From: Macrostomum lignano
Lineage: Eukaryota
DNA: 57,082 nucleotides
Direction: 5' to 3'
NCBI GenBank assembly: GCA_002269645.1
Contig: NIVC01002401.1
Location: 1-57,082, forward strand
Part shown: positions 1,105 through 55,879 of the stretch, one piece after another
How positions within the stretch are numbered: the first letter of the stretch is position 1
How the letters are laid out: each line of letters begins with the position of its first letter
Program-made: the position numbers and the translations under genes
Notes under the pieces: model-generated
The model's database searches: none
Seen by the model: only the letters and a program-made list of their open reading frames with translations
Told to the model about the DNA's origin: nothing

Positions 1105-1165
1105 ATGCAGAGAGTCTTCAGGGCGCTTCTGCTGGTGTCGATTTTGTGCAGCTTCTCTGCCGCAA
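1105..1165 (+). CDS. Lectin exon 1, signal peptide MQRVFRALLLVSILCSFSAA
   Basis: ATG at 1105, basic N-terminus, hydrophobic core, SAA cleavage site, phase-1 donor GTGAGT at 1166 matching the phase of the domain exons. Confidence 0.8.
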
Positions 1166-4100
1166 GTGAGTTGCCACCCTTTGTTTTCTGTGCTCAATGT
1201 TTCTCAAGTAAACTTTGAATGGTGCCATGCAGTTAGCATGCTTAGCAGTACTTAGTGTCCTCCGTTATGACAAACATTTTCTGGCTGTCTGCATCTGTAT
1301 TTGGGAACTTTTATACGTAGTTGATAGCAAATTCAGAAAAGACAAGAGGTCAGCTGCCTCCCTGTGAGTGAACTAAAAACTAAGGGAGACTCTAAGCAAG
1401 TTGAAAAATATTTCTTTCCAAACAAAATATACCATCGCTGCAGAGTAGCATGATCCTTCTGGTACCAGCAGTGAAATCAGAAGACAGCTGCGGGGAATTC
1501 AGAGAATAATCAACAGGCTGGATCCCCGTTTTTCTGATGAGTGGCTGCGAACCCTTCAATTATTTTTTTGAAGCAATTACTGGCAACGGAAAGTGGCATT
1601 CAAAAATTAGTACTCACACAAGTCACATAACTTTTACTTACCAACAATTCTCCAGTTCGGCTGCCCCTGCAGGCATGCAGGCAAAGCTCCACGCACACTC
1701 CGTGCCATCGAGCCATCGACGGCAACACTAACCAGAAGTGGTCCGGCAACTCCTGCTCGCACACCAACATGCAGAACAAGCCGTGGTGGCAGGCCAACAC
1801 GCCCAGACTGGCGCACTTCCACACAGTCCGGATTTACAACCGCCTCTGCGGACCCGGCTGCTCGTCGCACCAGAACAACATTGTGATCAAGGTGGACGGC
1901 GTTCCTTGCGCCTCGTACCACTCGAGCCACTACTTCTCTGTCAAGACGTTCCATTGCAACCGAGTCGGGCAGATTCTGGAGATCCACAGCACTGTGCGGT
2001 CCTATCTGATGCTGTGCGAGGTGCAGGCATTCGGAAAATGGGCTTCACTGGCCCACACTGGACGTAAGCTTGCTTAAAATAAGCTTCTACCGCTGAGGGA
2101 TTAAAATATATTTCCAATTAGAAAATAAATTAACACGCATGTCTACAGGCTTACACTCGTAGCTTGCATATATTATTAGCCAAAATTGATTGGCATCTAC
2201 TATCATGCTAAGAGCTACAATACATCCACAAGTTTACATTTTGCACATTAGTACAGATGACTGCAAACACCGATTTCAGACCGAATACCGCTCAGTGACT
2301 GCAGACAGAGCTCAACTCACACACCCTGTCGAAGAGCCATCGACAATAACCTCAACCAGCATTGGTCCGGAAAGTCGTGTGCTCACACTAAGCGTCAGAA
2401 GAACCCATGGTGGCAGGCAAACACGAACCGTCTCGCTCACATCAAGCAGGTCCGAATCTACACTCGACTGTGCACTCCGCCTTGTAGGGTGTACTTTAGA
2501 CACATCGTCGTCAAGGTCGACGGCCACATCTGTGCCAGACACAAGGGCGTTGGACTCGGTTCGACAATCACTCTCAGCTGCAACAGGGTCGGGCAGATTG
2601 TAGAGATTCAGGCTATGGCAAAAAGAACGTACCTGATGTTGTGCGAAGTCCAGGTTTTCGGAACGTATGCTTCTCTGGCTCATAAAGGCGGTAAGTCACG
2701 CAATCCAGTCTATCATTTAGTACAGATTTTGCATTCTGATGCTAACAAGGATATTTTATGATGCATTCGTACCGAAACCATTTTAGCCAAACTGCCTCTG
2801 CAAGACTGCAGACAGAGCTCAACTCACACACCCTGTCGGAGAGCCATCGACAATAACCTCAACCAACACTGGCCTGGAAAGTCGTGTGCTCACACTAAGC
2901 GTCAGAAGAACCCATGGTGGCAGGCAAACACGAACCGGCTCGCGCACATCCAGCAGGTCCGAATCTACACTCGACTGTGCACTCCGCCTTGTAGGGTGTA
3001 CTTTAGACACATCGTCGTCAAGGTCGACGGCCACATCTGTGCCAGACACAAGGGCGTTGGACTCGGTTCGACAATCACTCTCAACTGCAACAGAGTCGGG
3101 CAGGTTGTAGAGATTCAGGCTATGGCAAAAAGAACGTACCTGATGTTGTGCGAAGTCCAGGTTTTCGGAACGTATGCTTCTCTGGCTCATAAAGGAAGTA
3201 AGACTACAGGGCATGAATACGCACATGGTTATTTCTCCATCGAATTCGATCGTACAATCATGTCGCCATTAGGAGCGAAACTATACGATAAAACTTTCCC
3301 AATCTAGGTATGCTGCCCTTACAAGAGTGCAGGCAGAGTTCAACGCACACGCCATGTCGGAGAGCCATTGATAACAACCTGAACCAACACTGGCCTGGAA
3401 AGTCCTGCTCGCACACGAAGATGCAGAAAGGCCCGTGGTGGCAGGCGAGCACAAACCGATTGGCTCACATCAGACAGGTGCGAATCTACGCTCGGCTCTG
3501 CGGACCAGTGTGCTCCAGATACCTGAAGGACCTAATCATCAAGGTTGATGGGCACGTTTGTGCCAGATACACATCGACGAAGGGCTACCTCTCGACCCAC
3601 ACGTTCGAGTGCAACAGAGTTGGCCAGGTAGTCGAAATTCGGTCTCGAGCGAAGACCTATCTGATGCTGTGTGAGGTTCAGGTTTTCGGAAACTACGCCT
3701 CGTTAGCACACAAAGGACGTAAGTTTTTTTTTACAGAGGTGGCAGTTTTAGGCATACTCTGACAAAATTACATGTTCGACCGACATTACATGTTACCGAC
3801 AGATTATCGAAAATATGTTTTGCAGGTCTGCTGCCACTTCAAGACTGCAGACAGAGCTCAACTCACACACCCTGTCGAAGAGCCATCGACAATAACTTCA
3901 GCCAGTATTGGTCCGGAAAGTCGTGTGCTCACACTAAGCGTCAGAAGAACCCATGGTGGCAGGCAAACACGAACCGTCTCGCTCACATCAAGCAGGTCCG
4001 AATCTACACTCGACTGTGCACTCCGCCTTGTAGGGTGAACTTTAGACACATCGTCGTCAAGGTCGACGGCCACATCTGTGCCAGACACAAGGGCGTTGGA

Positions 4101-7100
4101 CTCGGTTCGACAATCACTCTCAGCTGCAACAGAGTCGGGCAGGTTGTAGAGATTCAGGCTATGGCAAAAAGAACGTACCTGATGTTGTGCGAAGTCCAGG
4201 TTTTCGGAACGTATGCTTCTCTGGCTCATAAAGGAGGTAGGATTTTGAGAGTATCTATTTAGCTTTTCTGTTTGATATTTGGGGTAAGATCGGAGTAAAA
4301 GTGCTAGTAGAACTAAACAAATAGACAGTCAATTCAAGTAGTAATGTTTCTTTTGATTAGAAAGAAGATGGAGTTGCAAAAAGCGAATTGTATGAATGAG
4401 AATATCTGTCTAATATCCTTTAGTGACCAGCCAGACACAAAGAGACACATTGAGACAATTGGCGAGCAAGGCGAGCAACGCGCGGGAGGCGCACAGCGAA
4501 AAAGCGACCTCCAAACCCAAAGCGAGCAAGCGAACAAAAGCAGAAGGCTGGGAGCTAAAACAAAGCAGAGACACCACCGGCAAAAGTTACAGCAGCCACC
4601 GCTGCCTGGTGAAACTGGGGGAGATAACGCTGCACAGCCTCACTTTTCCAATCACCAATGCGCATGATATCAGACACTGGGAGGCCTAGCACAGACGCCC
4701 AGGTAGCTCCTCCTCGTCGCAGACTGTGCGCGGAGTAAGAGCCAGCTGCAGCCTGTCGGTCTCGTCAACTAGTCGTCGCATCTCCGTCAGCATTGTAGGT
4801 GACACAGGCCGCTTTCGGTTCACGCGCAGTCCGAGGACCCGTTTAGCGCCGCGTAGGAGAAGAACCGCTGAAGCGTGATTAGTCAGGTCCGGCGACGAGT
4901 TAATTCGGAACCAGAGCGACAGAGAGCTGTAGACTGCCGAAATGCTGCTGTAGGCATGTAGCCGTGTGCCGATCAGACTGGCCAAATAGTTCAGCAGGCT
5001 CGTGACGTTGCAGGACACTGGATCGCAGCCGGTATGGCGGCAGAACTCCCGCCACTCACGGACGTGTCTGTTGACTGCCTGCGCCGACCTTGGTGCGTAC
5101 GCAGCGCTCAGCAGCGATGTGGCGCGGCTGCTAAGAGAGTCTGACGCAGCTGGGCGGCCTGAAAATGAAGAAAGGAGGCGGTCGCCAAGCCAAAAGCATG
5201 CTGATGCAGTGATTGTAGAATGCTTGGGCAAATAAAACCATAACAGCGGAGTAAAAAGTTTAACAGCTGGCCTCGCTCATGCAACCGCGAGGCAGCGTCA
5301 GCAAAAATTTAAAAATCACCAGGCACATGAAACGCGCGAATGCTCATCCCAAAATGCAAACACACCAGAGCCACCGTCTACAGCAGCCGCTGCAACGCAG
5401 GACACTTTGAAACGCCTTTGTTGATGATGTGACAGGCCGTCTGGTTGTCGCAGTAGATGCTCACCTTGCAACCTTTGAGCACATCCCTCCACCTCATCAC
5501 TGCCAGCAGAGAGACCAACGCTTCCTTGTAGTTGATCGGCAGGTTCGCGAAGACTGATCCTGCATCCTTCTCCCAGTCCAGGTAGCACCAGTCAAACAGA
5601 CCATCCTGGTCACGCAGCAGCGCCGCACCACCTCTGCCTCACGCATCGGACTCCATCGCCACAACTCGATTGTAGCTCGGCCACAGCTGCACCCATCGGC
5701 ACGCCTGTAACGCCACCTTCCACCAATTCAGCTGACTGCGTAACCCGGAGTCGACCAGCGTTCGCTGTCCGCGCCGTAAGGTGTTGCACCGCTCAATCAG
5801 CTCACGCAAGAAGGTCCTTCCGCAACTGATGACCTGAGCTGCCCACCCCAACTTGCCAATGATCTGTTGGAGGGCCCACTGACTAATCCTCACCTTGGCT
5901 GACTCGGAACCAACCAGGTTGATCAACTTCTTTGCCTTCTCATCCGGCAGCTTCTTGATTCCTTCCACAGTGTCGAACTCAATTCCAAGGAATGACATCC
6001 GCTGCGCCGGCAGCTGGCACTTGGCCGGATTGACGGTGAATCCCAGCCGAGTCAGCAAGTCAATCAGATCGACGTAGAAGCGCTGGCAGTTCTCCTGCGT
6101 CCCGCAGTAGGCAAAGTCGTCCAGGTAAGACTCGGTGTTGATGAAGCCTCTGCGCACCATCATCAGATGAATCGCATTGCTCAGGCGTTGAAAGCACGTG
6201 ACCGAGGCTGCCGCCCCGAACGGCAGGCGCGTATCAAACATGTAGGTGGGAGTGGCGCAGCCAGGAAACTTGAACTTGAGACCGGTGTTGACGAATTCTC
6301 CTGGGTGCACTCCACATGCGCGGTATGCTTCACTCCGGTCAACTTTAGTCATGTAGCAGCCTCTCGTTAACTTTCTTGCGAAGTTTTCAGCGCTTGAAAA
6401 TCGCAACTTCTCATTGCTCTCCCAGTGCGCGTTCACCGACAGATTGTCCGGCCGACTGCAATCGTGAATTAGGCGTACCCGACCGTCATCCTTCGGCAGG
6501 GCACCCAGCGCACTCACAATCCGAGGCCGCCACTTATCCGAGCACCGACGGTAGCGGTCAAGGCGAATTTCTCTCAGAATTTGCATTTGAACAGCTTCAG
6601 CGTAAACATTCACAGACTCGTAGTTGCTGACCTCGACAGACTTCAGGTTTTCTCGCTGCACATTCGTAATCCGAAATCCCTCAGACACACCATCAAGAAT
6701 AAACTGCTTTCTGTCCAGCGGCAGATCAATCGACTCCAACTCTTCCATCCAAGCCTCCAGCTTTAGGTCGGTTGATAAAACAGAGGAAGTTAAAACAGGA
6801 TCGACGCGCAGTCAGTGCAGAGGCCTGCTCACCTCAGCACCGTCATCCCTGTGCGCCATCGCCGCTGAGTGGCCAAGTCCACAACGCCGGCACCGATGAG
6901 CGAAACGGCAGTTCCGCCTTGAGCATCCAGCTTCCTTGTTGAAATCAAAGCAGGGTGGCTGCAGGCTTTGTCTTTGCACCCGGTCAACTCTGGCAGTCGG
7001 TGCACTCTGTGGGGCCATCAGGTAGGTGGCAACTCGACCAAGGTCGGATCCGCGCGACTCTCATGACGTCTCGCCATCTTCACTCAGTCTTCACTCGTCA

Positions 7101-10100
7101 TTAAACCTCATGACTCGAGCCTTGTCAAACCCGAGGTCAAACAGCTCGCCAATGCGCGCAGTGTAGCGCAGATAGTCACGCAACTCTGACACATCAGGCT
7201 GGCCGCCCAGCCCGCTCTTCACCAACCTGCCATCATCCAGCAACTTCAGAATGATTCGAGCATTCGCCGAGATCCAGTCTCCAAACGTCAGCGAGTCAAC
7301 AACAGCTTCCTTCACTCTGAAGGTGACTCTCCCTGATTTGTCAATGGACTGAGTCACTCCTGCTTCCTGCTGCTTCCGCTTGTTAATAAACTCAGGGATT
7401 CGGTACACCTTGCCTACAAACCGACTGGGCTCTTGCTGGGCAGCATCTTCATCGTCAGACCACAGGTTAATGAGCAACTCACCGGGATTCTTTGACGTCG
7501 CAGGCCTTCGCTGAAGTTGGCTGACTTCCGCCTGAAGCAGAGCGGCCTCCTTGCGTAGCTTTAGCAGTCGGAGCTGCTTCTCAGCCTCCACCAGCTCGTC
7601 GTCCAGGCCGCCAGCCGCGTCAGACTCTTGACCATGTTGTACCGAATCGTTCGCGATAGAAGGCAGTTGCCTCTCCGCCATAGCGCCGTTTCTTCTTTTA
7701 CGCGTCGTCACTGCGGCAGCTTCATCTTGCTCCTCGTCCTCGTCGTCCGCATTCTCAAAGTCGGAGGCGATGCCCTCGAGGTGCGCCCTCAGCCGCATTA
7801 AAAGTTCACATTTTTTGCCTTGTGTTGAAAGCCCTAGGCTCTGAAGCTTCTCACGTAGCGCCCTTACAGTGCTAGGCGCTTCGGGTGCAACTGGCTCGTT
7901 AGGGTTTGGCATGATTGTGCAAAAAAAACATTTGCTGGCTGTCTGCATCTGTATTTGGGAACTTTTATACGTAGTTGATAGCAAATTCAGAAAAGGCAAG
8001 AGGTCAGCTGCCTCCCTGTGAGTGAACTAAAAACTAAGGGAGACTCTAAGCAAGTTGAAAAATATTTCTTTCCAAACAAAATATACCATCGCTGCAGAGT
8101 AGCATGATCCTTCTGGTACCAGCAGTGAAATCAGAGGACAGCTGCGGGGAATTCAGAGAATAATCAACAGGCTGGATCCCCGTTTTTCTGATGAGTGGCT
8201 GCGAACCCTTCAATTATTTTTTTGAAGCAATTACTGGCAACGGAAAGTGGCATTCAAAAATTAGTACTCACACAACTCATAACTTTTACTTACCAACAAT
8301 ACTCCAGTTCGGCTGCCCCTGCAGGCATGCAGGCAAAGCTCCACGCACACTCCGTGCCATCGAGCCATCGACGGCAACACTAACCAGAAGTGGTCCGGCA
8401 ACTCCTGCTCGCACACCAACATGCAGAACAAGCCGTGGTGGCAGGCCAACACGCCCAGACTGGCGCACTTCCACACAGTCCGGATTTACAACCGCCTCTG
8501 CGGACCCGGCTGCTCGTCGCACCAGAACAACATTGTGATCAAGGTGGACGGCGTTCCTTGCGCCTCGTACCACTCGAGCCACTACTTCTCTGTCAAGACG
8601 TTCCATTGCAACCGAGTCGGGCAGATTCTGGAGATCCACAGCACTGTGCGGTCCTATCTGATGCTGTGCGAGGTGCAGGCATTCGGAAAATGGGCTTCAA
8701 TGGCCCACACTGGACGTAAGCTTGCTTAAAATAAGCTTCGACCACTGAGGGATTAAAATATATTTCCAATTAGAAAATAAATTAACACGCATGTCTACAG
8801 GCTTACACTCGTAGCTTGCATATATTATTAGCCAAAATTGATTGGCATCTACTATCATGCTAAGAGCTACAATACATCCACAAGTTTACATTTTGCACAT
8901 TAGTACAGATGACTGCAAACACCGATTTCAGACCGAATACCGCTCAGTGACTGCAGACAGAGCTCAACTCACACACCCTGTCGAAGAGCCATCGACAATA
9001 ACCTCAACCAGCATTGGTCCGGAAAGTCGTGTGCTCACACTCAGCTTCAGAAGAACCCATGGTGGCAGGCAAACACGAACCAGCTCGCGCATATCAAGCA
9101 GGTCCGAATCTACACTCGACTGTGCACTCCGCCTTGTAGGGTGTACTTTAGAAACATCGTCGTTAAGGTCGACGGCCGCGTCTGTGCCAGACACAAGGGC
9201 GTTGGACTCGGTTCGACAATCACTCTCAACTGCGACAGGGTCGGGCAGGTTGTAGAGATTCAGGCTATGGCAAAAAGAACGTACCTGATGTTGTGCGAAG
9301 TCCAGGTTTTCGGAACGTATGCTTCTCTGGCTCATAAAGGAAGTAAGACTACAGGGCATGAATACACACATGGTTATTTCTCCATCGAATTCGCTCGTAC
9401 CATCATGTCGCCATTAGGAGCGAAACTATACGATAAAACTTTCCCAATCTAGGTATGCTGCCCTTACAAGAGTGCAGGCAGAGTTCAACGCACACGCCAT
9501 GTCGGAGAGCCATTGATAACAACCTGAACCAACACTGGCCTGGAAAGTCCTGCTCGCACACGAAGATGCAGAAAGGCCCGTGGTGGCAGGCGAGCACAAA
9601 CCGATTGGCTCACATCAGACAGGTGCGAATCTACGCTCGGCTCTGCGGACCAGTGTGCTCCAGATACCTGAAGGACCTAATCATCAAGGTTGATGGGCAC
9701 GTTTGTGCCAGATACACATCGACGAAGGGCTACCTCTCGACCCACACGTTCGAGTGCAACAGAGTTGGCCAGGTAGTCGAAATTCGGTCTCGAGCGAAGA
9801 CCTATCTGATGCTGTGTGAGGTTCAGGTTTTCGGAAACTACGCCTCGTTAGCACACAAAGGACGTAAGTTGTTTTTTTACAGCAAATTATTTCTTTAAAG
9901 AGGTGGCAATTTTAGGCATACTCTGACAAAATTACATGTTCTACCGACATTACATGTTACCGACAGATTATCGAAAATATGTTTTGCAGGTCTGCTGCCA
10001 CTTCAAGACTGCAGACAGAGCTCAACTCATGCACCCTGTCGAAGAGCCATCGACAATAACTTCAGCCAGTATTGGTCTGGAAAGTCGTGTGCTCACACTC

Positions 10101-11480
10101 AGCTTCAGAAGAACCCATGGTGGCAGGCAAACACGAACCGTCTCGCACACATCCAGCAGGTCCGAATCTACACCCGACTGTGCACTCCGCCTTGTAGGGT
10201 GAACTTTAGAAACATCGTCGTTAAGGTCGACGGCCGCATCTGTGCCAGACACAAGGGCGTTGGACTCGGTTCGACAATCACTCTCAACTGCAACAGGGTC
10301 GGGCAGGTTGTAGAGATTCAGGCTATGGCACAAAAAACGTACCTGATGTTGTGCGAAGTCCAGGTTTTCGGAACGTATGCTTCTCTGGCTCATAAAGGAG
10401 GTAAGATTTTTAGAGTATCTATTTCGCTTTTCTGTTTGATATTTGGGGGTAATATCGGAGTGATTGTGCTAGTAGAATTCTACAAATCGACAGTCAATTC
10501 AAGTAGTGAATGTTTCTTTTGATTAGAAAGAAGATGGAGTTGCAAAAAGCGAATTGTATGAATGAGAATATCTGTCTAATATCCTTGACTTTTTTGTTCA
10601 TACAGCACTTCTGCCGCTGAAGCACTGCAGCCAAAGCTCCACCCACACGCCGTGCGCCAGAGCCATCGATGGGAAGCTGGCGCAGCACTTTACTGCAAAG
10701 TCCTGCTCTCATACGAAAATGCAGACGAAGCCGTGGTGGCAGGCAAAGACCATTAAGCCGGCCTTTATCCAACAGGTGCGAATCTACGCCCGCTTGTGCG
10801 GCCCGGTGTGCTCGCGGTATCTCAAAAACATCATCGTGAAGGTGGATGGGAGAGTGTGTGCCAGTTACCACTCCACTGCTGGCTATTTGTCAACGCGGAC
10901 TTTTAATTGCAATCGCTACGGCAGTACAGTTCGAATCGAATCTACTGCCAAGACCTACTTGATGCTGTGCGAGGTCCAGGTGTTGGCCGATACGGCAGGA
11001 AGCCACCAACCCGTGAGCTGAGTTTAGCATTAATCTGCGTGCTTTGTGCTTGAGCTCTGTGTTTGATCAAATTGATGCAGCCTCAAAGCTTCCTTAAATT
11101 TAAATTTCAGACATTGAACCTGGAACTGGTGAGGAGACTGGAACCCATGAGACAGGAACTACTGGTGAGTCGGGATCGCCTTCAGGACATGGAGAAACTG
11201 GGAGGTGGTGAGCTTTGAGAGGCACTGCATTGATGGCCACGACTCATCGGAGCACAAGCTGGGCACGTCCTGGACTACGAAGGTGCCGGCAGAGGGCTAC
11301 TGCTATCACTACTCGTGCACCGAGAAGTCCGAGGCGGGCCCTGTGAGCGTCGACTGCATGGACGCTTCCGGGCACTGCGTGAAGCCGAGCAGCGAGGGCA
11401 CGGACTTTGCCTGCAGATCCGGCTACACCAGCTGCTCTTGCGTCCACCGGGACGGCAGGACGGGCATCATTTTCTCCTGA
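1105..11480 (+). CDS. Secreted multi-domain F-type lectin (fucolectin/FTP, F5/8-like) gene: signal peptide, 10 lectin domains and a probable Cys-rich tail
   Basis: Exons 1105-1165, 1656-2063, 2280-2690, 2787-3197, 3308-3718, 3826-4236, 8308-8715, 8932-9342, 9453-9863, 9990-10400, 10606-11012, then 11111-11480 with unresolved frame. All have AG/GT sites. Each domain shows QSST..RAID.N, CxHT, PWW, V.IY.R and L.LCEV.V, the hallmarks of F-type lectin domains. Confidence 0.85.
1656..2063 (+). CDS. F-type lectin domain exon, type A (copy 1)
   Basis: tccag|TT..AC|gtaag, 408 nt, phase 1-1; RLPLQACRQSSTHTPCHRAIDGN...CSHT...PWWQ...IYNRLCGPGCS...LMLCEVQAFG. Confidence 0.88.
2280..2690 (+). CDS. F-type lectin domain exon, type B
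   Basis: tttcag|AC..G|gtaagt, 411 nt, phase 1-1; RIPLSDCRQSSTHTPCRRAIDNN...CAHT...IYTRLCTPPCRVYF...LMLCEVQVFG. Confidence 0.88.
2787..3197 (+). CDS. F-type lectin domain exon, type B
   Basis: ttttag|CC..A|gtaaga, 411 nt, phase 1-1, paralogous to 2280-2690. Confidence 0.88.
3308..3718 (+). CDS. F-type lectin domain exon, type C
   Basis: tctag|GT..C|gtaag, 411 nt, phase 1-1; MLPLQECRQSST...IYARLCGPVCSRY...LMLCEVQVFG. Confidence 0.88.
3826..4236 (+). CDS. F-type lectin domain exon, type B
   Basis: ttgcag|GT..G|gtagga, 411 nt, phase 1-1. Confidence 0.88.
4555..5231 (-). pseudogene. Tyrosine recombinase of the element, internally deleted
   Basis: N-terminal SAM-like part (AAYAP...WREFC...LLNYLASL...LLLRGAKR...KRPVSP) in ORF 4686-5231. 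C-terminal catalytic part YSAHSLRRGGATWA...IMRIGDWKSEAVQRYL in another frame at 4737-4555. The box I Arg region is missing. Confidence 0.85.
5108..6811 (-). pseudogene. RT/RNase H (pol) of the element with in-frame stops
   Basis: LKLEAW...ALPKDDGRVRLIHDCS...LPFGAAAS...YLDDF...FLGIEFDT, then RNase H ESDA*GRGG...INYKEA...CDNQ...HVPG..*..ADAASR. Stops at 5639-5641, 5378-5380 and 5309-5311. Confidence 0.88.
6812..7912 (-). pseudogene. Gag-like ORF1 with N-terminal SAP-like motif and C-terminal Cys/His zinc finger
   Basis: TVRALREKLQSLGLSTQGKKCELLMRL (SAP-like); CFDFNKEAGCSRRNCRFAHRCRRCGLGH (DIRS/Ngaro gag finger). ORFs 7091-7999 and 6812-7018 are one frame broken by TGA at 7091-7093 and 7061-7063. 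Confidence 0.75.
8308..8715 (+). CDS. F-type lectin domain exon, type A (copy 2)
   Basis: Near-identical to 1656-2063 with the same splice sites. Confidence 0.85.
8932..9342 (+). CDS. F-type lectin domain exon, type B (chimeric)
   Basis: 5' flank and start as exon 2280; 3' end and downstream intron as exon 2787-3197; 411 nt, open frame. Confidence 0.85.
9453..9863 (+). CDS. F-type lectin domain exon, type C (copy 2)
   Basis: Near-identical to 3308-3718. Confidence 0.85.
9990..10400 (+). CDS. F-type lectin domain exon, type B (copy 2)
   Basis: Counterpart of 3826-4236; open frame, AG/GT intact. Confidence 0.85.
10606..11012 (+). CDS. F-type lectin domain exon 10 (unique, outside the duplication)
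   Basis: tacag|CA; LLPLKHCSQSSTHTPCARAIDGK...CSHT...IYARLCGPVCSRY...LMLCEVQVL; likely donor GTGAGC at 11013 (phase 0). Confidence 0.85.
11111..11480 (+). CDS. Probable terminal exon(s) of the lectin: linker plus Cys-rich module (VWC/PSP94-like spacing), frame unresolved
   Basis: Acceptor tttcag at 11110; GC-rich ORF RHCIDGHDSSEHKLGTSWTTKVPAEGYCYHYSC...C...C...C...CSC ending in TGA at 11480. Confidence 0.5.
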
Positions 11481-14503: not shown

Positions 14504-16629
14504 ATGCAGTCGATTGGCCTCGCCGCTCTCGCTCTGCTCTGCGCCGCCGCCTGCGCATCGGCGGCCAGCCCAGCCCGATACCCGCTGGTCCTGGTCTCCT
14601 GCGACGGCTTCCGCTACGACTACCTCAACTGGTACCCCAACGAGACGCAGTTCCTGAGGTCGCTCATCAAGCAGGGCGTGCACGTCAAGTCCATGAAGCC
14701 GGCCTTTGCCACAAAGACCTTCCCCAACCACTGGACCATCGCCACGGGACTCTACCAGGAGAGCCACGGCATCGTCGGCAACAGCATGTACGACCCGCTG
14801 TTCAACGCCTCCTTCAACAAGGGCACTCGAGATGAGCGCTGGTGGAACGCATCCGAGCCGATCTGGATCAACGCGAAGAAGCAGGGACTGAAGTCGGCCA
14901 CGTTCTTCTGGCCCGGCAGCGAGGTCTCGTTCAAGGGTGTTCGTCAGGACTACTGGTTCAACTACAGCGGAAGTGTGAGCTTTGAGACCCGGGTGAGCAC
15001 CGTGCTGGAGTGGATCACCGAGAAGGACGTGCAGATGGCCACAATGTACCTACATGAGCCCGACGGCACCGGACATGATTTCGGTCCTGAGTCTCAAGAA
15101 ATGAGGAAAGTTTTAAAGAAAGTTGACGACACCATCCGCTCGCTATTCGAAGGACTGAAGGCGAAGAAATTCTCAGATAAAGTCAATGTCCTGATTGTAT
15201 CAGACCACGGTGAGGACATTCTTAGTTTTGCCTAAAAGGAGGAAGCCTGAATGATTAAGCTGTATATTAATTGCTTGAGTTTTCTTTGTAACAGTTTCAT
15301 TTCTAGTGTGCGAACCTTCAAATCGAAAACTTATCTCGGACCAGATTTTTTAATCTAAAACCAACTTCCAAGATACAGCAAAGAGAGAGAAACAAGATTT
15401 TTATGTGTCGCAGAAAAGAATGAGCAAAACGCGGGAAGCACAGGTAACAGCTCTGTGATTTAGTATGTCTTTTTTCCTGACTTCCGTTCACTTCTGGCCG
15501 CTGACTGGGCTTTCTCTCAGCACAGGAGCTGAGCTGTTTGGCTGTGCATTTTATCTGAGCCGGTTAGCTGAGGCTTGCCATTGACCAGCAGTTGCAGGCA
15601 AGAATTGACGAAACTGTCAAAATTCGTTAGCCTTATCAGTAGTCCGCTATCTGAGATTCCCGCTGCAGCAGGGGCTGGGCGCAGAGTACAATTTTCTGTT
15701 TTTAACGCAGTTCAAACTGCCATCCATAGTGGAAGGAATCCATTCTCAGCTATCCAAGCGAGTATTCTGTAGGGTCGCCACGCCAGCCAAATGTCCCTGG
15801 CTGTACACTCAATATTCATTGCTGTGACAGGGGCAGCAACTGAAAACTGTAGGGAGTTGCGATCCCAGTACTGTCGGGACTTAAGAGGGCCAGTCAGGCA
15901 TATTTTAATACATTGTATTGGCACAACGATCCACATGTGTTTCACCCAGATTTTCCATCAATGTAAGCACTGCACCATTTGATACATATGCAGAATAGAA
16001 CCGACATTTGCATCATTTCAGGCATGATGGGCATGACGCCTGACAAGGTGATCCGCCTGAACAGCAGCATGGACGAGCTCGTAGACCGAGTCCTGGACAG
16101 CGGACCGCTGCTGGCCATGAATGCCAAGCCGGGTAAGCGGAAGCAGCTGGTGGAGTACCTCAACAACCAGGTGCGCCAGCGCAACCTTTCCATGCGCGTG
16201 TTCGACAAGGACAGTCTGCCGGAGCGACTCCACTACGCCAAAAACCGCAGGACGCCCGAGGTGCTCGTGCTGCCCGACCAGGGCTACCTGGTGCTGACCA
16301 GCAAGGATACGAAGCCAGTAAGTTCCGGTCACCACGGCTTCGACAACAGCTACAGCGACATGCGGGTGCCGATGTTCGCCGTTGGGCCCAGTTTCCGTCA
16401 AGGCGTCGAGCTAAACGGCGTAAACGACGGTAGCTTCCGTCAGGTGGACATCTACGGTCTGATGTGCCACCTGCTGCAGATCCGGCCGCAGCCAAACAAT
16501 GGGTCCGGCGAGTTGCTGCCACAGATGCTGAAGTCTTCAGCCCGCAGTGCCACGCGCGCCTCTAGCTGGCACCCGCTATTCGGCCTGATTTTCCTGGCTT
16601 GGGCTTTGCAGAAACTGATCATGACCTGA
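14504..16629 (+). CDS. Ectonucleotide pyrophosphatase/phosphodiesterase, ENPP4/5-like (~437 aa; exons 14504-15209, 16022-16629)
   Basis: Signal peptide; LVSCDGFRYDY, TKTFPNHWTIATGLYQESHGIVGN, YLHEPDGTGH, SDHG|M, GHHGFDN, VDIYGLMCHLL; hydrophobic C-terminal tail; phase-1 intron. Confidence 0.93.
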
Positions 16630-17392: not shown

Positions 17393-18623
17393 TTGAATCC
17401 ACTGCACTGTCTGAATCCACTGCACTGTCTGAATCCACTGCACTGTCCTGAATCCACTGCACTGTCTGAATCCACTGCACTGTCTGAATCCACTGCACTG
17501 TCCTGAATCCACTGCACTGTCCTGAATCCACTGCACTGTCTGAATCCACTGCACTGTCTGAATCCACTGCACTGTCCTGAATCCACTGCACTGTCCTGAA
17601 TCCACTGAACTGTCTGAATCCACTGCACTGTCCTGAATCCACTGCAGTGTCCTGAATCCACTGCAGTGTCCTGAATCCACTGCACTGTCCTGAATCCACT
17701 GCACTGTCCTGAATCCACTGCACTGTCCTGAATCCACTGCACTGTCCTGAATCCATTGCACTGTCCTGAATCCATTGCACTGTCTGAATCCACTGCACTG
17801 TCTGAATCCACTGCACTGTCCTGAATCCACTGCACTGTCCTGCATCCACTGCACTGTCCTGCATCCACTGCACTGTCCTGCATCCACTGCACTGTCTGAA
17901 TCCACTGCACTGTCTTGAATCCACTGCACTGTCCTTCATCCACTGCACTGTCCTGAATCCCTGCATTGTCCTGAATCCACTGCACTGTCCTGAATCCACT
18001 GCACTGTCCTTCATCCACTGCACTGTCCTGAATCCATTGCACTGTCTGAATCCACTGCACTGTCCTGAATCCACTGCACTGTCCTGAATCCACTGCACTG
18101 TCCTGAATCCACTGCACTGTCCTGAATCCACTGCACTGTCCTGAATCCATTGCACTGTCCTGAATCCATTGCACTGTCTGAATCCACTGCACTGTCTTGA
18201 ATCCACTGCACTGTCCTTCTCCTTCATCCACTGCACTGTCCTGCATCCACTGCACTGTCCTGCATCCACTGCACTGTCCTGCATGCACTGCACTGTCTGA
18301 ATCCACTGCACTGTCTTGAATCCACTGCACTGTCCTTCATCCACTGCACTGTCCTGAATCCCCTGCATTGTCCTGAATCCACTGCACTGTCCTGAATCCA
18401 CTGCACTGTCCTTCATCCACTGCACTGTCCTGAATCCCCTGCATTGTCCTGAATCCACTGCACTGTCCTGAATCCACTGCACTGTCCTTCATCCACTGCA
18501 CTGTCCTGCATCCACTGCACTGTCTTGAATCCACTGCACTGTCCTTCATCCACTGCACTGTCCTGCATCCACTGCACTGTCCTGAATCCACTGCACTGTC
18601 CTGAATCCACTGCACTGTCCTGC
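17393..18623. repeat. Minisatellite of 18/19 bp units (C)CTGAATCCACTGCACTGT, ~1.2 kb
   Basis: About 65 tandem units read directly; explains the repetitive ORFs at 17270-18634. Confidence 0.97.
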
Positions 18624-19035: not shown

Positions 19036-19788
19036 TTAATCGAAGGGCGATACGCATTCACAAAGGGCGCCAAAGAGACCCATATCGGTGATGTCCACTA
19101 CGTCCACTATGGTCATGTGTCGAGCGGTGGCCATTTCGCTAAATCCACTCGGTTCACCAGTTCCCCACACAGAGCCGATCGTGATGTTGCAGCCGACCCA
19201 AAACCAGCCGTCTGCCTCCTGGGCTCCCGGAAACACCCGGTAGCCGCCCAGGTACATGGGATAGGTGGGGGAGTGAGCGACAAACAGGGCATTCACGTGG
19301 CTCAGCTCAGCTGCGTCAGCGACATCGGCCATGATCACCAGGCCCGGCTCCGACTCGCACCTTCCTCTCTGAACCGCCCAAGTTGCGTTGTTCTTCAGCA
19401 CCCGGTACTTCACTCCGCACAGCTCGTCGCCGTAGCCGGGAGGACACAGCGAGCCCGCCGAGAGTCCCGGCTGCCGCTTCACGAACAGGCGGCCTCTCCT
19501 GGAGCAGCCGCAGTCCCTCACCAACTTGCTGCACTTGTCGAACACGAACAGCTGGCACAGACCGTCGGCGGTGGTGAAGGCCTGGCAGCGCTGATCGGAG
19601 CCGCAATGCAGAGAGCACGGCAGGTCCGAGGTGATGCCGCTCAGGTTGCGGGTGAAGGCGCTGCGGATGCAGAGGGAGCCGTCCTTGACCTCTGAGAAGG
19701 CCACAGGGCACTGCTGGCTGCCCTGAGCCGCCACCAACAAGGCCAAGGTAGCCAAGATTCGAATCGATAGCTGAACTCCTTCTGGCAT
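19036..19788 (-). CDS. Secreted PAN/apple-like plus C-type lectin-like protein (single exon, 250 aa)
   Basis: Signal peptide MPEGVQLSIRILATLALLVAA; CSLHCGSDQRCQAF...CQLF (PAN); CPPGY...KY...TWAVQRGRC...YLGG...WFWV...WGTGEP...ALCE (CTLD). Confidence 0.75.
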   Translation of the reverse strand: MPEGVQLSIRILATLALLVAAQGSQQCPVAFSEVKDGSLCIRSAFTRNLSGITSDLPCSLHCGSDQRCQAFTTADGLCQLFVFDKCSKLVRDCGCSRRGRLFVKRQPGLSAGSLCPPGYGDELCGVKYRVLKNNATWAVQRGRCESEPGLVIMADVADAAELSHVNALFVAHSPTYPMYLGGYRVFPGAQEADGWFWVGCNITIGSVWGTGEPSGFSEMATARHMTIVDVVDITDMGLFGALCECVSPFD

Positions 19789-22822: not shown

Positions 22823-24971
22823 ATGGCAGACCGCAACAGCGAAAGTCGCACCGACCTCGTGTTCGTGGAGGGGAAGCTGGGAGCAGCATACGGAGCAACC
22901 GATGGCGGCGGAGCGGAGATTAAGTTCAGGTTGGCCGCACAAATAGGGCATCAAGTTAAATGCATTACGAGGTCATAAAGCATGCATGAAGAATAAAAAC
23001 AACCTTTCCAGGGACCAGTCCTCCAGAGCGCTCTACGAGGCCGAACCGAGAAGCGGCCTCTTGGGCGTGGCCGACCGCTTCGGCGCAAAGTTTTTCCCTC
23101 TCGGCTACTGGAGCGAGTTCCGCGAGATCGCCAAGCTGCACCTGCCCGCCTTCCTCACCTGCTTCTTCCAGTTCCTGCTGCAGACAATCAGCGTCATCAT
23201 GTGCGGCCACCTGTCCAAGGAGCAGCTGGACGCTGTCGCTCTCGCCTGCACCCTCATCAACGTGGCCGCCCTGAGCATCGGTCTCGGACTGTCCACCGGC
23301 TGTGACACCTACTTTGCTCAGACCTTCGGCAGCCGACACAAGAAGCGAGTCGGACTGTACCTGCAGCGTAGCCTACTCGTCATGTACATGTTCCTGGTGC
23401 CCGTGTACTGCCTGCACCTGAACATCAAGCCAGTGCTGCTGCTACTGGGCCAGGACCCGATCATCAGCGACATGACCGCTCGCTACATCCTCATCTTCAT
23501 GCCCGGCGTGTTTTTCGACTACACTTTCTTGGTGCTGGCGAGGTATCTGCAGACGCAGAACCGCGTCAACCCGCCGCTCGTGTGCGCAGTGATCGGCAAT
23601 GTGTTCAACGCGGTGTCGCAGTACATCGCCATCTACGTGATGGGCTTCGAGTTCGAGGCCTCGGCGGTGTGTCAGGCCGCCTCGCTTTTCGTGATGTGCC
23701 TCTGCATCCTGGTGTACATCCGCGTGTTTCGCGTGTTCGAGGAGACTTGGGACGGCTGGAAGACCGAGGCTCTCTACGACATCGGCGGATTCATCAGGCT
23801 GGCGGTTCCGGGACTGCTGCTCGTATCGCTGGAGAACATCAGCTTTGAGGTTAGTGTATATTTTTTCAGTTGCAGTAAATTGGTCGGCACAAAGAAATTG
23901 CCACTGCATTTTATATTGCCATATTAGCGATGCTCTTGAAGACCAAAATTCAAGACCAAACCGTTTAAAACTTTTTTCTATACTGGACTCGCATTTGACT
24001 GCATGCACCTGCAGGTGGGAACATTCCTGGCGGGCAGTCTGAACGCAGTGCAGCTGGCAGCGCAGGCCATTCTATTCCAGAGCATCAGCCTGCTGTATAT
24101 GGTGTGCATCGGCATGTCCATCGCGGTGAACATCCGTGTTGGTCAGCACCTGGGCGCTGGCAACATTGAGAAGGCCAAGCATACCTGCAAGGTGGCCGTG
24201 ACAATGATTTTAGTGACATCAACTTTGATTTGCGTATTTTTCGCTACCTGCAGGGAGCAAGTGGCGAGCATCTTCACCAGCGATCCGGAAGTGAAGGCGG
24301 CAACTGTGGAGCTGCTGGCTGTGTACGCCCCGTACCCCTACTTTGATGGCCTGTCTGCCACCGCGGCCGGCGTCCTGAAGGGCAGCGGCCAGCAGCTGAT
24401 CGGTGCCGCCGTCAACATCGTCGCCTACGACTTCATCTCGCTGCCGATCGGGATTCCGCTGAGTCTGCTCACCCCGCTGCAAATGAAGGGGTTCTGGATC
24501 GCAATGTTGCTCGGCATCGTGCTTCAGAGCATTGTATTCTGGCTTATCATCTGGCGGACCAACTGGGAGAAGCAAGCAGCCGCAGCGCTGTCCAGAGCGT
24601 CCGGTCAGCAGATCAAAAAGACGCCTAAGAGACGTCGTAAAAATTTGAGCAGAGAAGATCAAACGGAGCCGCTACTGGCCTCAGAAATTAAGCCCTCTCA
24701 CGTCCGGTCGGCCTCGCGAGTGTACTCGACTCCGTACGAGAGTGAGGTGGAGCTGGACTTGGCTCAGCCTCCGAGTCTGCCGCCGCTGCGGCCTGTGCTG
24801 ATCCGGCGGCTGGCGACGTGGCTGTGCCTGGCCGTCTGCTTGGCTGCTGCCATTGTGCTGCGGTTATTCCAAGGTGTGCTGGTTCCGCTTAGGTGGTTTG
24901 ACCTGTGCCTGCCAGCTAGAAACGGCTCAGAGTCCCTGAAGCTTGAGTCCAATATAACTTTCTGTAGTTGA
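22823..24971 (+). CDS. SLC47A: MATE family multidrug and toxin extrusion transporter, paralogue 1 (~633 aa; exons 22823-22929, 23012-23849, 24015-24971)
   Basis: ISVIMCGHLSKEQLDAVALA, GLSTGCDTYFAQTFG, VGLYLQRS, RYLQTQN, IRLAVPG, RVGQHLGAG, GVLKGSGQQ..GA, GFWIAM; intron phases 2 and 0 are consistent. Confidence 0.92.
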
Positions 24972-25684: not shown

Positions 25685-26385
25685 ACCGAATCGTACCGAA
25701 CCGAAATGTAACGATCCGAAACCTACCAAACCGAATCGTACCGAACCGGATCCTTCCTCTAATCGTACCGAACCGGATCCTACCTATAATCGTACCGAAC
25801 CGGATCGTACTGAACCGAATCCTACCTCTAATCGTACCGAACCGGATCGTACTGAACCGAATCCTACCTCTAATCGTACCGAACCGGATCGTACTGAACC
25901 GAATCCTACCTCTAATCGTACCGAACCGAAACCTACCAAACCGAATCGTACCGAACCGAATCCTACCTCTAATCGTACCGAACCGGATCGTACTGAACCG
26001 AATCCTACCTCTAATCGTACTGAACCGAATCCTACCTCTAATCGTACCGAACTGGATCCTACCTCTAATCGTACCGAACCGATTCGTACCGAACCGAATC
26101 GTACCGAACCGAATCGTACCGAATCGAATCGTACTGAACTGAACCGAACCGTACCGAGCCGAATCGTAACGAACCGAATCGTACCGAACCGAATCGTACG
26201 GAATCGAATCGTACCGAACCGAATCGTACTGAGCCAAATCGTACCGAATCGAATCGTACCGAACCGAATCGTACTGAGCCAAATCGTACCGAATCGAATC
26301 GTACCGAACCGAATCGTACTGAACCAAATCTGACCGAACCGAATCGTATCAAACGGAATCGCATTACAACCGCACCGAATCGCCT
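25685..26385. repeat. Pentamer-derived tandem repeat (ACCGA/ATCGT) with 42 bp and 15 bp higher-order periods
   Basis: CCTACCTC recurs at 25821, 25863 and 25905 (42 bp period); the right half is ACCGAACCGAATCGT (15 bp period). Confidence 0.93.
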
Positions 26386-29999: not shown

Positions 30000-32224
30000 A
30001 TGTCGCATAGCGGTGGCGCCCAACATCACGGGGCTGACCTGCCAGCTGGTGAGAAGCGGGGCAAGGACACCGCCGCGTACGGAGCACTTGATGGCGCCGT
30101 ACTGGAGTTCAGGTGAGACTCGTACTCTGAAATTGGCTCAGTATCATGATGCAAAAATACTGAAAATCGGGCATGTAATTTGGGTTGCCGAGGAAATGCC
30201 GCTTTCCGTTTTGATTTTCCACACGAAATAATAATTCTGTGCTTGACTGTTTTCTCTACTTTCGCCGTACAGGCATAGCTTGAAGCAATCAAGAAACTGT
30301 CCGTCCCTCCGCACTGCAGGGACCAGTCCTCCAGAGCGCTCTACGAGGCCGAACCGAGAAGCGGCCTCTTGGGCGTGGCCGACCGCTTCGGCGCAAAGTT
30401 TTTCCCTCTCGGCTACTGGAGCGAGTTCCGCGAGATCGCCAAGCTGCACCTGCCCGCCTTCCTCACCTGCTTCTTCCAGTTCCTGCTGCAGACAATCAGC
30501 GTCATCATGTGCGGCCACCTGTCCAAGGAGCAGCTGGACGCTGTCGCTCTCGCCTGCACCCTCATCAACGTGGCCGCCCTGAGCATCGGTCTCGGACTGT
30601 CCACCGGCTGTGACACCTACTTTGCTCAGACCTTCGGCAGCCGACACAAGAAGCGAGTCGGACTGTACCTGCAGCGTAGCCTACTCGTCATGTACATGTT
30701 CCTGGTGCCCGTGTACTGCCTGCACCTGAACATCAAGCCAGTGCTGCTGCTACTGGGCCAGGACCCGATCATCAGCGACATGACCGCTCGCTACATCCTC
30801 ATCTTCATGCCCGGTGTGTTTTTCGACTACACTTTCTTGGTGCTGGCGAGGTATCTGCAGACGCAGAACCGCGTCAACCCGCCGCTCGTGTGCGCAGTGA
30901 TCGGCAATGTGTTCAACGCGGTGTCGCAGTACATCGCCATCTACGTGATGGGCTTCGAGTTCGAGGCCTCGGCGGTGTGTCAGGCCGCCTCGCTGTTCGT
31001 GATGTGCCTCTGCATCCTGGTGTACATCCGCGTGTTTCGCGTGTTCGAGGACACTTGGGACGGCTGGAAGACCGAGGCTCTCTACGACATCGGCGGGTTC
31101 ATAAGGCTGGCGGTTCCGGGACTGCTGCTCGTATCGCTGGAGAACATCAGCTTTGAGGTAAGTACGAGTATAACTGGAACCTTTAAAGCAGCATGATCTT
31201 ATCAGTGAATCTGAAAGAGTTTTCAGTTGTCATGTTTTTTTTACTTTTTTTGTGAAATTTGCAGATAGGAACCCTTGTGGCGGGCAACATCAGCCTCCTT
31301 CAGCTGGCGGCGCAGGCAATCGTGTTCCAGACCGCCTCTCTGCTGTACATGGTGTGACTCGGCATGTCCATCGCTGTAAACATTCGAGTCGGACAGCACC
31401 TTGGCGCTGGTAAGGTCGAGCAGGCCATCCACACCTGCAAGGTGGCCGTCACTATTATCATGGTCACCTCCACTGTGATCTGCGTGACCTACATGACCTG
31501 CAAGGACCCGATAGCTAGCATCTTCACCAGCGATCCGGAGGTGAAAGCCGCCACCACCGAGCTGATGACAATCTACGCTCCCTTCCCGTTTGTCGATGGC
31601 CTCTCCGCCACGGCGTCGGGCGTCCTGAAAGGCAGCGGGCGGCAGTTGATCGGGGCTGTCGTGAACATCATCGCCTATGACGTCATCGCTCTGCCCATTG
31701 GGTTGCCTCTAAGCCTGCTCACTGGGCTTGAGATGAAGGGATTCTGGATCGGCGTTCTGGTCGGAATCTCTATAGAGACGGTTGTTTTCTGGGGCATCAT
31801 CTGGCGGACGAACTGGCAAAAGGAAGTCAGCAATGCGCGTGTTAGAGCGTCCGGCCAGCAGATGGGTTTGAAAGCTGGTCGTCATGGCAGCAGGACTCGG
31901 TCCGCAGTGGACGAAGATCAAACGGAGCCGCTACTGGCCTCCGGCAAACGCGGGCACGTCCGGTCGGCCTCGAAAGTGTACTCGACCCCGTACGAGAGTG
32001 AGGTGGAGCTGGACTTGACTCAGCCTCCGAGTCTGCCGCCGCTGCGGCCTGTGCTGATCCGGCGGCTGGCGACGTGGCTGTGCCTGGCCGTCTGCTTAAT
32101 CGCGTCCATTGTGCTGCGAGCGTTTCAGGAGACGCTTTTCCCACTGAGGTGGTTCGAGCTGTGCCTGCCGGCCGGCAGCAACTCTACGTCCGTGTCAGGG
32201 ACCAATTTCACCGTGTGCTCGTGA
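30000..32224 (+). CDS. SLC47A: MATE transporter paralogue 2 (exons 30000-30112, 30320-31157, 31265-32224) with an in-frame TGA at 31355-31357; possible pseudogene
   Basis: Same exon phases as paralogue 1. LLYMV*LGMS aligns with LLYMVCIGMS of paralogue 1. Confidence 0.85.
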
Positions 32225-38298: not shown

Positions 38299-38315
38299 GG
38301 CTCGCAGCTCGAATC

Positions 38316-38823
38316 GTGAATTGGTGATCGCCAGCAGGGTTTCACTAAAGTTTAGCGTGAGTTGGTGATCGCCAGCAGGGTTTCAATACAGTTTAGCGTG
38401 AATTGGTGATCGCCAGCAGTGTTTCACTACAGTTTAGCGTGAGTTTGTGATCGCCAGCAGGGTCTCACTACAGTTTAGCGTGAATTGGTGATCGCCTGCA
38501 GGGTTCAACTACAGTTTAGCGTGAGTTGGTGATCGCCAGCAGGGTTTCACTACAGTTTAGCGTGAGTTGGTGATCGCCAGCAGGGTTTCACTACAGTTTA
38601 GCGTGAATTGGTGATCGCCAGCAGGGTTCAACTACAGTTTAGCGTGAGTTGGTGATCGCCAGCAGGGTTTCACTACAGTTTAGCGTGAATTGGTGATCGC
38701 CAGGAGGGTTTCACTACAGTTTAGCGTGAATTGGTGATCGCCAGCAGGGTTTCAATACAGTTTAGCGTGAATTGGTGATCGCCATTAGGGTTTCACTACA
38801 GTTTAGTGTGAATTGGTGATCGC
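38316..38823. repeat. 41 bp minisatellite, ~12 copies, just 3' of the qvr stop codon
   Basis: GTGAATTGGTGATCGCCAGCAGGGTTTCACTACAGTTTAGC repeated head to tail with no spacers. Confidence 0.97.
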
Positions 38824-40087
38824 TACCATGGATTTATTGTTCACGTTGTCCCGTCCCGCTATTATTTACATGTTCTGTGTTTCCTTGCTTTTCGCTTCTA
38901 CAATTCATTCTTAATCTCATCGAAAACGAAAAATTGCTGCCTATTTGAGTTTTTTGCTTTTTTTAGTCAGTTTCCGTCAGCGTTTTGCATTCGCTGCTTT
39001 AATCAGTTCCGCCGTACGGACCCGACGCGATTGTCTCTTGTTATACTGCAGTGCTTTTATCTGTCACTTTTCTGTCTGCGCGCCCAGAATCCAGGACCAA
39101 ATTAGGCTACAATTGTCACGTGATGCACGGGTCCAGTTGGACAGCCTGTTGGCCTGCTGACAACCGGATTTTCTTTTTTCGTTTTTGTTTGTTTTGTTCA
39201 TTGATGTTGTGGCAGCGTGTTTTTATCTTGCAATATTTTGTTTTACTTACTGGTCTTTCAGCCCCGCCCCTGCCCGCAGCAACCTGTTGAAACAGGTGGC
39301 TCCGCAATAATAGCTTGGAGTTCTCTGTCCTGCTTTTTTCTGTTGAGTCTGGACTTTTCTGACTGTAAATATATTTTTCTCGCAGTTTTGCCTTGAACTT
39401 TCTTGGCAAAGAAAAACTAAAGAAGGAAGTCAGTCTCCGTAACTTCTATTTAACTGTTTTAAAGTTGCTCAACAGGTGAGAGGCGCCTCCAGTGTATTTT
39501 TCTGCTCGGATGCAATTTATAACCTGAAAGCCCTGTAGGTTTATGGAGCAGTTTCCAGCAACAACGAAAAATATTTTTGCATCACAGGCCAAATCCTTAG
39601 ATGCTTTGAGTAAAGTAATTAACTACTTGTAAGAAAGTACAAAAGAAAGCAGTCACCTGTGCAGAAGTGCAGCTGGGTATAGAGGTCTGCTTTAGTAGTT
39701 CAACACCAGTGAAAATGGCGCACTAGACACCTTATCTGCAAAAATATGCATCCATACTACAGCTCAGACAGGTACCGCGGTGAGTCATCTACAAGGTAAC
39801 CATTGTTTTGCGATACGAGCGTACGTTCATAAAAAATCAACAGGAATCTATCAAACTAGTTTGTATCTGTCAGCTTATTTATTTCCAAATCCTCTCAAAA
39901 AGTCTCACAGAAGATCATAGAATGAGATGAGAGTGACGAATTTCACCGTGGCAACGTCTCAATCTGGGGCAGAGACTCGGCGCTTGGCCAAGTGACTTCG
40001 TTGGGTCAGTGCGGCGCTGGCACGGAGGTGTGAAAATATGAAGAATATCCCAGCGAATATCGTGGTTGCTCTGCAGTGAAGCGGTGC

Positions 40088-55871: not shown

Positions 55872-55879
55872 ATAAATTT

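Follow-up and report, generated by a model that had tools for sequence, protein, structure and literature searches.

A Macrostomum lignano gene with ten tandem F-type lectin domain exons and a probable block duplication bridged by a retroelement

How many domains does a tandem-repeat lectin gene have when its exons are nearly identical and its genome assembly is highly redundant, and by what route could that number change? This question is raised by a locus (locus tag BOX15_Mlig000828g2) on scaffold NIVC01002401.1 of the Macrostomum lignano assembly Mlig_3_7 (GCA_002269645.1), of which we analyzed a stretch of 57,082 nucleotides (nt), called the window here when the whole stretch is meant. The original prediction, made from the sequence alone, had placed a ten-domain F-type lectin gene at positions 1105 to 11480, built from symmetric exons, able to change its domain number by recombination, and possibly yielding combinatorial splice isoforms. 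We checked exon borders, splice sites, and phases by script and compared the locus with three other scaffolds of the same assembly, NIVC01000868.1 (L001), NIVC01002342.1 (L002), and NIVC01004330.1 (L003). Our explanation, taken as a whole, is that the region is in all likelihood one protein-coding gene for a secreted protein, with a signal peptide, tandem domains of the F-type lectin fold, a low-complexity linker, and a Cys-rich tail.

The array is marked by ten plus-strand copies of the anchor TGGTGGCAGGC (Trp-Trp-Gln-Ala) between 1784 and 10734, each in an open frame that runs from an AG acceptor to a phase-1 GT donor. Exon 1 (1105-1165, plus strand, 61 nt) contains the ATG and the signal peptide MQRVFRALLLVSILCSFSAA, which shows a hydrophobic core in its Kyte-Doolittle profile, and ends in phase 1 at the donor GTGAGT; the N terminus is the same in the deposited proteins P0001, P0068, and P0069. 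On the same strand follow exons A1 (1656-2063) and A2 (8308-8715), both of 408 nt, and seven exons of 411 nt, namely, B1 (2280-2690), B2 (2787-3197), C1 (3308-3718), B3 (3826-4236; donor GTAGGA), B4 (8932-9342), C2 (9453-9863), and B5 (9990-10400). All nine are of phase 1-1 and hold one domain each, as had been predicted together with the phase-1 signal peptide exon and the tenth domain exon, D (10606-11012), which has 407 nt in the window and 408 nt, in phase 1-1, in the three sister loci. Nucleotide identities (99.8% for A1/A2, 100% for C1/C2, 92 to 96% among the B copies, and 59 to 72% between types) confirmed the four exon types and their order A-B-B-C-B-A-B-C-B-D. Spliced together, exon 1 and the ten domain exons form a single open frame of 4170 nt (1389 amino acids [aa]), and a pattern of ten copies of a 136-aa domain is not attributable to chance. 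Since every domain exon is symmetric, including D in its 408-nt form, any of them can be skipped with the frame left intact, in agreement with the predicted frame-safe skipping, and given that B3 ends and A2 starts in phase 1, the frame also survives the 4071-nt intron between them (4237-8307). The GTAGG donor variant of B3 recurs in the L003 B exon directly upstream of D (position 10404). Upstream of the gene, a TATA-like hexamer at 1007-1012 on the plus strand, ∼95 nt before the ATG, is a pattern match only.

The last coding exon (11111-11480, plus strand, with its stop codon at 11478-11480) encodes a Gly/Thr/Glu-rich linker and a tail of ∼90 aa with ten cysteines. Two bases present in L001 are missing from the window: exon D reads TT instead of TTT near 10983-10985, and the last exon reads GGG instead of GGGG near 11200-11202. 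The missing base in exon D shifts the frame and thereby creates an apparent stop at 11019-11021, and the two gaps account for the shifted, spurious end VLADTAGSHQPTLNLELVRRLEPMRQELLVSRDRLQDMEKLGGGEL of the deposited window protein P0068 (PAA58200.1, 738 aa). At the first gap site L001 and L003 carry T and L002 carries C; at the second, L001 and L003 carry G and L002 carries C, both variants being synonymous. With both bases restored, the maximal open reading frame (ORF) measures 4533 nt (1510 aa), covers the signal peptide, the ten domains, the linker, and the 10-Cys tail, and ends at 11480, and its C terminus agrees with those of P0001, P0069, and P0070. The tail is present in frame in these three proteins and occurs verbatim in P0001 and P0002. 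Its 92 aa had no match in Pfam or in a phmmer search of the PDB; a word-indexed homologue search returned no candidate either, although P0001 and P0002 contain the tail exactly, and a single-sequence AlphaFold model of it reached a predicted local distance difference test score (pLDDT) of 43. The tail might mediate oligomerization or anchoring.

As to the nature of the repeated domain, a phmmer search of the PDB with a single B domain returned striped bass FBP32 (3cqo) as the top match (E value of 1.4e-18), with further matches to 4gwi, 2j1r (4.6e-07), and eel agglutinin 1k12 (1.1e-04); the solved lectins matched include lectinolysin and the fucose-binding module of S. pneumoniae. The closest protein matches were M. 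lignano proteins, in a UniProt cluster named “FTP domain-containing.” The Pfam profile scan gave a divided answer, with PF22633 at 23 to 29 bits on both sides of its cutoff of 27.8 and PF00754 under its own cutoff. An AlphaFold2 model of the B1 domain, built on a 39-sequence domain alignment, had a pLDDT of 90 and a predicted template modeling score of 0.86, and in a Foldseek search of the PDB its top 11 matches were all F-type lectins (including 3le0, 2j1r, 3cqo, and 1k12; template modeling [TM] scores of 0.74 to 0.80, E values of ∼1e-9 to 1e-10), followed by CBM32 and discoidin-type domains at ∼1000-fold weaker E values. The predicted assignment to F-type lectins is thus upheld, and membership of the domains in this fold family can be taken as established from the PDB sequence matches and the structural neighbors of the B1 model. 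None of the domain exons contains a stop in any of the four loci (the window, L001, L002, and L003). The eight B copies, which alone differed enough for a measurement, evolve under purifying selection, with pairwise Nei-Gojobori ratios of nonsynonymous to synonymous substitution (dN/dS) of 0.15 to 0.61, a crude whole-exon measure. Together, the ten open exons, the canonical splice sites, and the purifying selection on the B copies suggest that the default product would be a ten-domain protein of ∼1510 aa, presumably a secreted multivalent binder whose avidity would scale with domain number.

The binding site itself is altered. The fucose motif described for F-type lectins consists of a His followed by Arg-x-Asp-x4-Arg/Lys, plus a vicinal Cys-Cys pair, with the Asp forming a salt bridge to the Arg (PMC5712786). 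All ten domains share an unchanged His and first Arg, which are separated by 26 residues, and in all ten the Asp is replaced by Cys and the vicinal Cys-Cys is gone, leaving R-L-C-x3-C in a loop that is two residues longer. The third basic residue lies at +7 in type B and at +8 in types C and D and is absent from type A, such that the canonical fucose motif is intact in none of the ten domains. The cation motif h2DGx reads AIDGN in type A, AIDGK in type D, and AIDNN in types B and C. Across 233 collected relatives, which included the 150 top-ranking representatives out of 1.84 billion proteins, no protein outside this M. lignano gene cluster had the C-x3-C loop. Given this derived loop, classic fucose binding is not to be assumed, and the part in glycan recognition, mucus, or adhesion that the original prediction put forward would be a candidate role.

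We then come to how the ten exons are arranged on the DNA. A duplication unit comprising the 3' part of intron 1, exons A1-B1-B2-C1-B3, and the 5' part of the B-to-D intron (1272-4420, plus strand) has its second copy at 7926-10586 on the same strand, with exons A2-B4-C2-B5 between the same two partial introns; homology of the first copy to the second ends exactly at 4420, and the two differ by ∼1 to 4%. The intron between B3 and A2 is accordingly composite, consisting of the start of a B-to-D intron (4237-4420), a retroelement, and the end of an intron 1 (7926-8307). Exon B2 is an extra B domain without counterpart in copy 2, where B4 begins like B1 and ends, together with its downstream intron, like B2. 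The 96-nt intron between B1 and B2 (2691-2786, plus strand) showed no similarity to the other introns of the gene, the rest of the window, or L001.

The retroelement itself (4421-7925, 3505 nt) lies on the minus strand, antisense to the gene, and is DIRS-like, with a SAP-domain ORF1 (PF02037), a reverse transcriptase (PF00078, E value of 5.3e-11, ORF 5639-6748 on the minus strand), an RNase H-like stretch, and a tyrosine recombinase, whose C terminus and motifs HSLRRGGAT...Y were read by eye in the six-frame translation. In L003, the copy of the element has an intact recombinase ORF of 353 aa, which matches P0075 (1.4e-31), a protein with PF00589 and PF13495; direct scans of this ORF against Pfam, NCBIfam, and the PDB gave no match, such that the link to PF00589 runs via the homologue P0075 only. 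The window copy carries frameshifts and, relative to L003, a 385-nt internal deletion at 4740 (L003 13636-14020), and since the deleted part holds the catalytic core of the recombinase, the window copy cannot be autonomous. It starts ∼10 nt before the ATG of ORF1 and therefore looks truncated at its 5' end, and no second copy was found elsewhere in the window or in L001. Judged from these sequence features, the insert appears to be a degenerate, 5'-truncated, and dead DIRS-type retroelement. A further insertion, of 216 nt and with AATAT at both ends, is present in L002 only (19470-19685, corresponding to window position 10577), 9 nt from the breakpoint at 10586. An Rfam scan of the window returned no RNA family.

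The sister scaffolds place this arrangement among several others. The assembly is PacBio based and highly redundant, owing to the extra copies of a large chromosome borne by the DV1 line (PMC5730564). L001 is collinear with the window at ∼98 to 99%, lacks the retroelement, and has seven domain exons in the order A-B-C-B-C-B-D. L002 has the same ten-exon arrangement as the window and differs from it up to ∼10,500 only by insertions or deletions (indels) of 1 to 2 nt and by two substitutions beside one of these, before substitution divergence sets in; the two probably represent a single molecule that was assembled twice, with a haplotype switch thereafter. Between L003 and the window there are 143 differing sites (∼1.2%), mostly substitutions, and 44 of these sites fall in the retroelement; L003 also has 385 nt more in the recombinase region. 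L003 is nevertheless collinear over both breakpoints (4420/4421 and 7925/7926) and has all ten exons intact and in the same order. In addition, the UniProt model P0002, which does not match the window in sequence, contains the junction of B3 to an A exon.

With seven domain exons in L001 and ten in the window, L002, and L003, with B1 and B2 facing the hybrid exon B4, and with the block duplication itself, the predicted change of domain number by recombination is directly supported. Because each domain occupies one exon flanked by phase-1 introns, unequal exchange can add or remove complete domains and leave the frame intact. The known forms are set apart by no fewer than three rearrangements, namely, the duplication of the five-exon block, the difference between B1 plus B2 and B4, and the duplication of a C-B pair in L001. 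Mismatches among copies and loci are mosaic (for example, B5 of the window differs by 6 mismatches from the second B of L001 and by 19 from its L003 counterpart), a pattern that fits gene conversion. The ancestral unit was probably close to A-B-C-B-D, and in this haplotype a five-exon block was in all likelihood duplicated inside the gene, with the junction of the copies filled by the 3.5-kilobase (kb), 5'-truncated, antisense DIRS-like element. The two copies also differ by one B exon, and the other locus (L001) has duplicated a C-B pair instead; unequal exchange between introns or homologous exons has thus in all likelihood taken place repeatedly.

Could the ten-exon form instead be an assembly artefact, produced by the head-to-tail fusion, at a shared repeat, of two alleles or homeologues of a five-domain gene? 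The DV1 assembly has 180 megabases in blocks at least 95% identical (PMC5730564), the difference between copy 1 and copy 2 resembles that between loci, and the window has consensus errors at sites that vary between scaffolds. Divergence gradients within the window alone did not decide between a real and an artefactual duplication; it was the sister scaffolds that settled it as real. Alleles misassembled in tandem had been named with the original prediction as an outcome that would speak against it, but the clearly distinct L003 has the same junctions and exon order, from which it follows that the duplication and the retroelement predate the split of at least two genomic copies and are not stitched alleles. 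P0002 joins B3 to A as well, and an artefact would require the same retroelement in the same orientation at two intron positions in two alleles, so that we give this explanation next to no credence. Hardly better placed, and very improbable in our view, is the idea that the window copy is a decaying pseudogene in which both frameshifts, that of exon D and that of the last exon, are genuine and the Cys-rich tail is lost. It would account for the two 1-nt deletions relative to L001, L002, and L003 and for the shifted C terminus of the deposited protein, but all ten domain exons are intact, and both gaps sit exactly at the T/C and G/C sites that vary among the other scaffolds, which is typical of consensus dropout where haplotypes have been collapsed. 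Given these haplotype-variable sites, and given that the window and L002 differ almost exclusively by small indels, both frameshifts are best read as consensus errors and not as mutations.

The readings that concern the product have somewhat more in their favor. None of the deposited models has all ten exons: the window model (P0068) contains A1, B4, C2, B5, and D and joins A1 to B4, skipping B1, B2, C1, B3, and A2; the L002 model contains A1, B1, B2, C1, B3, and D and joins B3 to D, skipping all of copy 2; the L001 model has five of the seven exons; and the L003 model (P0070) has A, a chimeric B, and D, with a junction from mid-B to mid-B (L003 18212-19660). The UniProt proteins of the cluster measure 826, 820, and 689 aa. 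All such skips are in frame, and one could hold that the locus yields five- or six-domain mRNAs from copy 1, copy 2, or a mixture of both, with the copies serving as alternative cassettes and not for valency. However, the models were built from mapped de novo transcripts and from StringTie/TACO assemblies of short reads (PMC5730564), and since reads have no unique placement among exons with 92 to 100% identity, we do not accept the exon choices of the models as isoforms. The intraexonic P0070 junction is a clear artefact, and three different exon choices in three near-identical loci suggest mapping ambiguity more than regulated splicing. We rejected the deposited models (with 5, 6, 3, and 5 domains) as evidence for alternative splicing on these grounds, and the combinatorial isoforms of the original prediction are not shown by them; splicing by block choice can be entertained as a tentative alternative but is unlikely.

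A somewhat more doubtful proposal is that the F-type fold has been kept but sugar binding lost, leaving a structural, adhesive, or protein-binding repeat protein. The Asp that would bridge the Arg (PMC5712786) is Cys in every domain, the Cys-Cys pair is missing, type A has no third basic residue, and types B and C have DN in place of DG in the cation motif; such deviations from the motif can mean lost binding or altered specificity (PMC5712786). On the other side stand the unchanged His and first Arg, the basic residue at +7 or +8 in types B, C, and D, the purifying selection on the B copies, and the C-domain of FBP32, which also lacks the Cys-Cys and is regarded as sugar binding all the same (PMC5712786). 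We consider a complete loss of sugar binding rather unlikely.

We therefore favor the reading of the region as one gene whose default product would have ten lectin-fold domains, and several points have to be set against it. One is the want of a full-length deposited model noted above. Another is that the noncanonical loop is the least confident part of the B1 model (residues 61 to 70, pLDDT of 74). Since the window and L002 are probably one molecule, independent support for the ten-exon form comes down to L003 and P0002, the latter of which we take, as a UniProt A0A1I8 entry, to stem from ML2, an older assembly. A single inbred line is the source of all the scaffolds, and P0002, if from ML2, partly shares PacBio reads with them (PMC5730564). 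Finally, skipping or premature termination might be favored by the 4-kb intron, which holds an antisense retroelement, and by the GTAGGA sequence of B3, a weaker donor.

Is this, then, a new kind of gene? It is not; its closest precedent is the sperm bindin of the oyster Crassostrea gigas, which has 1 to 5 F-lectin repeats whose variation has been attributed to recombination and alternative splicing, and in which a reverse transcriptase-bearing retroposon adjoins the repeats of a multirepeat gene (PMC5712786). Both systems have tandem F-type domains in varying number (here, seven versus ten between loci) and a retroelement near the repeats, which in M. lignano lies at the duplication junction. 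They differ in that every bindin repeat is interrupted by a variable intron, a hotspot of recombination, whereas each domain here is one uninterrupted exon, and in that bindin has documented isoforms and documented positive selection at its binding pocket, whereas the dN/dS of the B copies, measured over whole exons, is below 1. One may go further and imagine a bindin-like locus in which ten exons of four types and alleles of seven and ten exons are spliced combinatorially, such that individuals or tissues would express differing repertoires of a lectin with the C-x3-C loop, perhaps for self/nonself or gamete/ejaculate recognition in an outcrossing hermaphrodite; as a joint claim, we regard this as improbable. 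In the papers and supplements searched for Macrostomum lectins and for the locus tags Mlig000828 and Mlig003756, the gene was not mentioned, and neither expression nor functional data turned up.

Among solved structures, the best match is striped bass MsaFBP32/MsFTL1 (3cqo, E value of 1.4e-18, model TM score of 0.80). Phase-1 introns flank both repeats of MsFTL1, the first of which has a transposon-like sequence next to it (PMC12221842); the missing vicinal Cys-Cys of its C-domain is a further likeness. In contrast to the M. lignano gene, the fish protein, a serum opsonin with ∼26% identity, has only two domains, each in two exons, and keeps the canonical His-Arg-Arg triad and the Asp. Long tandem arrays are shared with the Xenopus pentraxin-fusion protein (five domains) and with P0004, P0013, P0014, P0095, and P0100. 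Arrays of five or six domains are common, and given that 13 and 15 stretches, perhaps with partial ones among them, were matched in P0095 and P0100, ten domains are probably not a record; these other arrays have a canonical R-x-D-C-C loop or other variants where the present gene has C-x3-C. The same domain also occurs in the M. lignano paralogues P0010 (three domains), P0004 (six domains and a kringle), and the WSC-FTP proteins P0007 and P0009, and each domain has its own genomic block in P0010 and approximately so in P0004. These paralogues differ from the present gene by their identity of 38 to 49%, by keeping N-R-x-D-C-C-x-x-R-L, and often by their WSC or kringle partners.

In the surroundings of the gene, ENPP-type phosphodiesterase genes (PF01663) flank the lectin gene on each side in the sister loci (5476-6987 and 18340-19277 in L001; 5012-6510 in L002), and one is found at 14504-16629 of the window, which starts too near the lectin gene to include the upstream one. 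Farther downstream, MatE ORFs (PF01554) at 22986-24971 and 31364-32224 suggest one or two MATE-family transporter genes. The window also contains minisatellite arrays at 17394-18622, 25685-26361, 38315-38823, 41220-41618, 46279-46709, 50968-51453, and 53358-53541, with repeat types of 19 nt x 65, 15/42 nt, 41 nt x 12, 23 nt x 17, 25 nt x 17, 42 nt x 12, and (AGTG)n; the length of the 19-nt array differs among the window, L001, and L003. Blocks of 67 to 69% G+C with long overlapping ORFs on both strands span 40001-42000 and 54001-56000, and a block of 32% G+C at 42 to 44 kb adjoins the G+C-rich one.

For users of the genome, our analysis indicates that the public annotation of this locus is wrong, with a frameshifted C terminus in one model, arbitrary subsets of exons in near-identical loci, and a junction inside exons. 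What is understood about lectin genes or about exon shuffling stays as it was; the features of its own that the locus contributes are the block duplication bridged by a retroelement and the C-x3-C loop. The latter, by which the Asp and the Cys-Cys pair have been exchanged, represents a naturally occurring variant form of this type of binding site and as such is of note for lectin biology. The former provides a clean and fully resolved example of how domain number evolves at the level of whole exons, with the states A-B-C-B-C-B-D, A-B-B-C-B, and A-B-C-B side by side in one genome and with a retroelement marking one of the duplication junctions.

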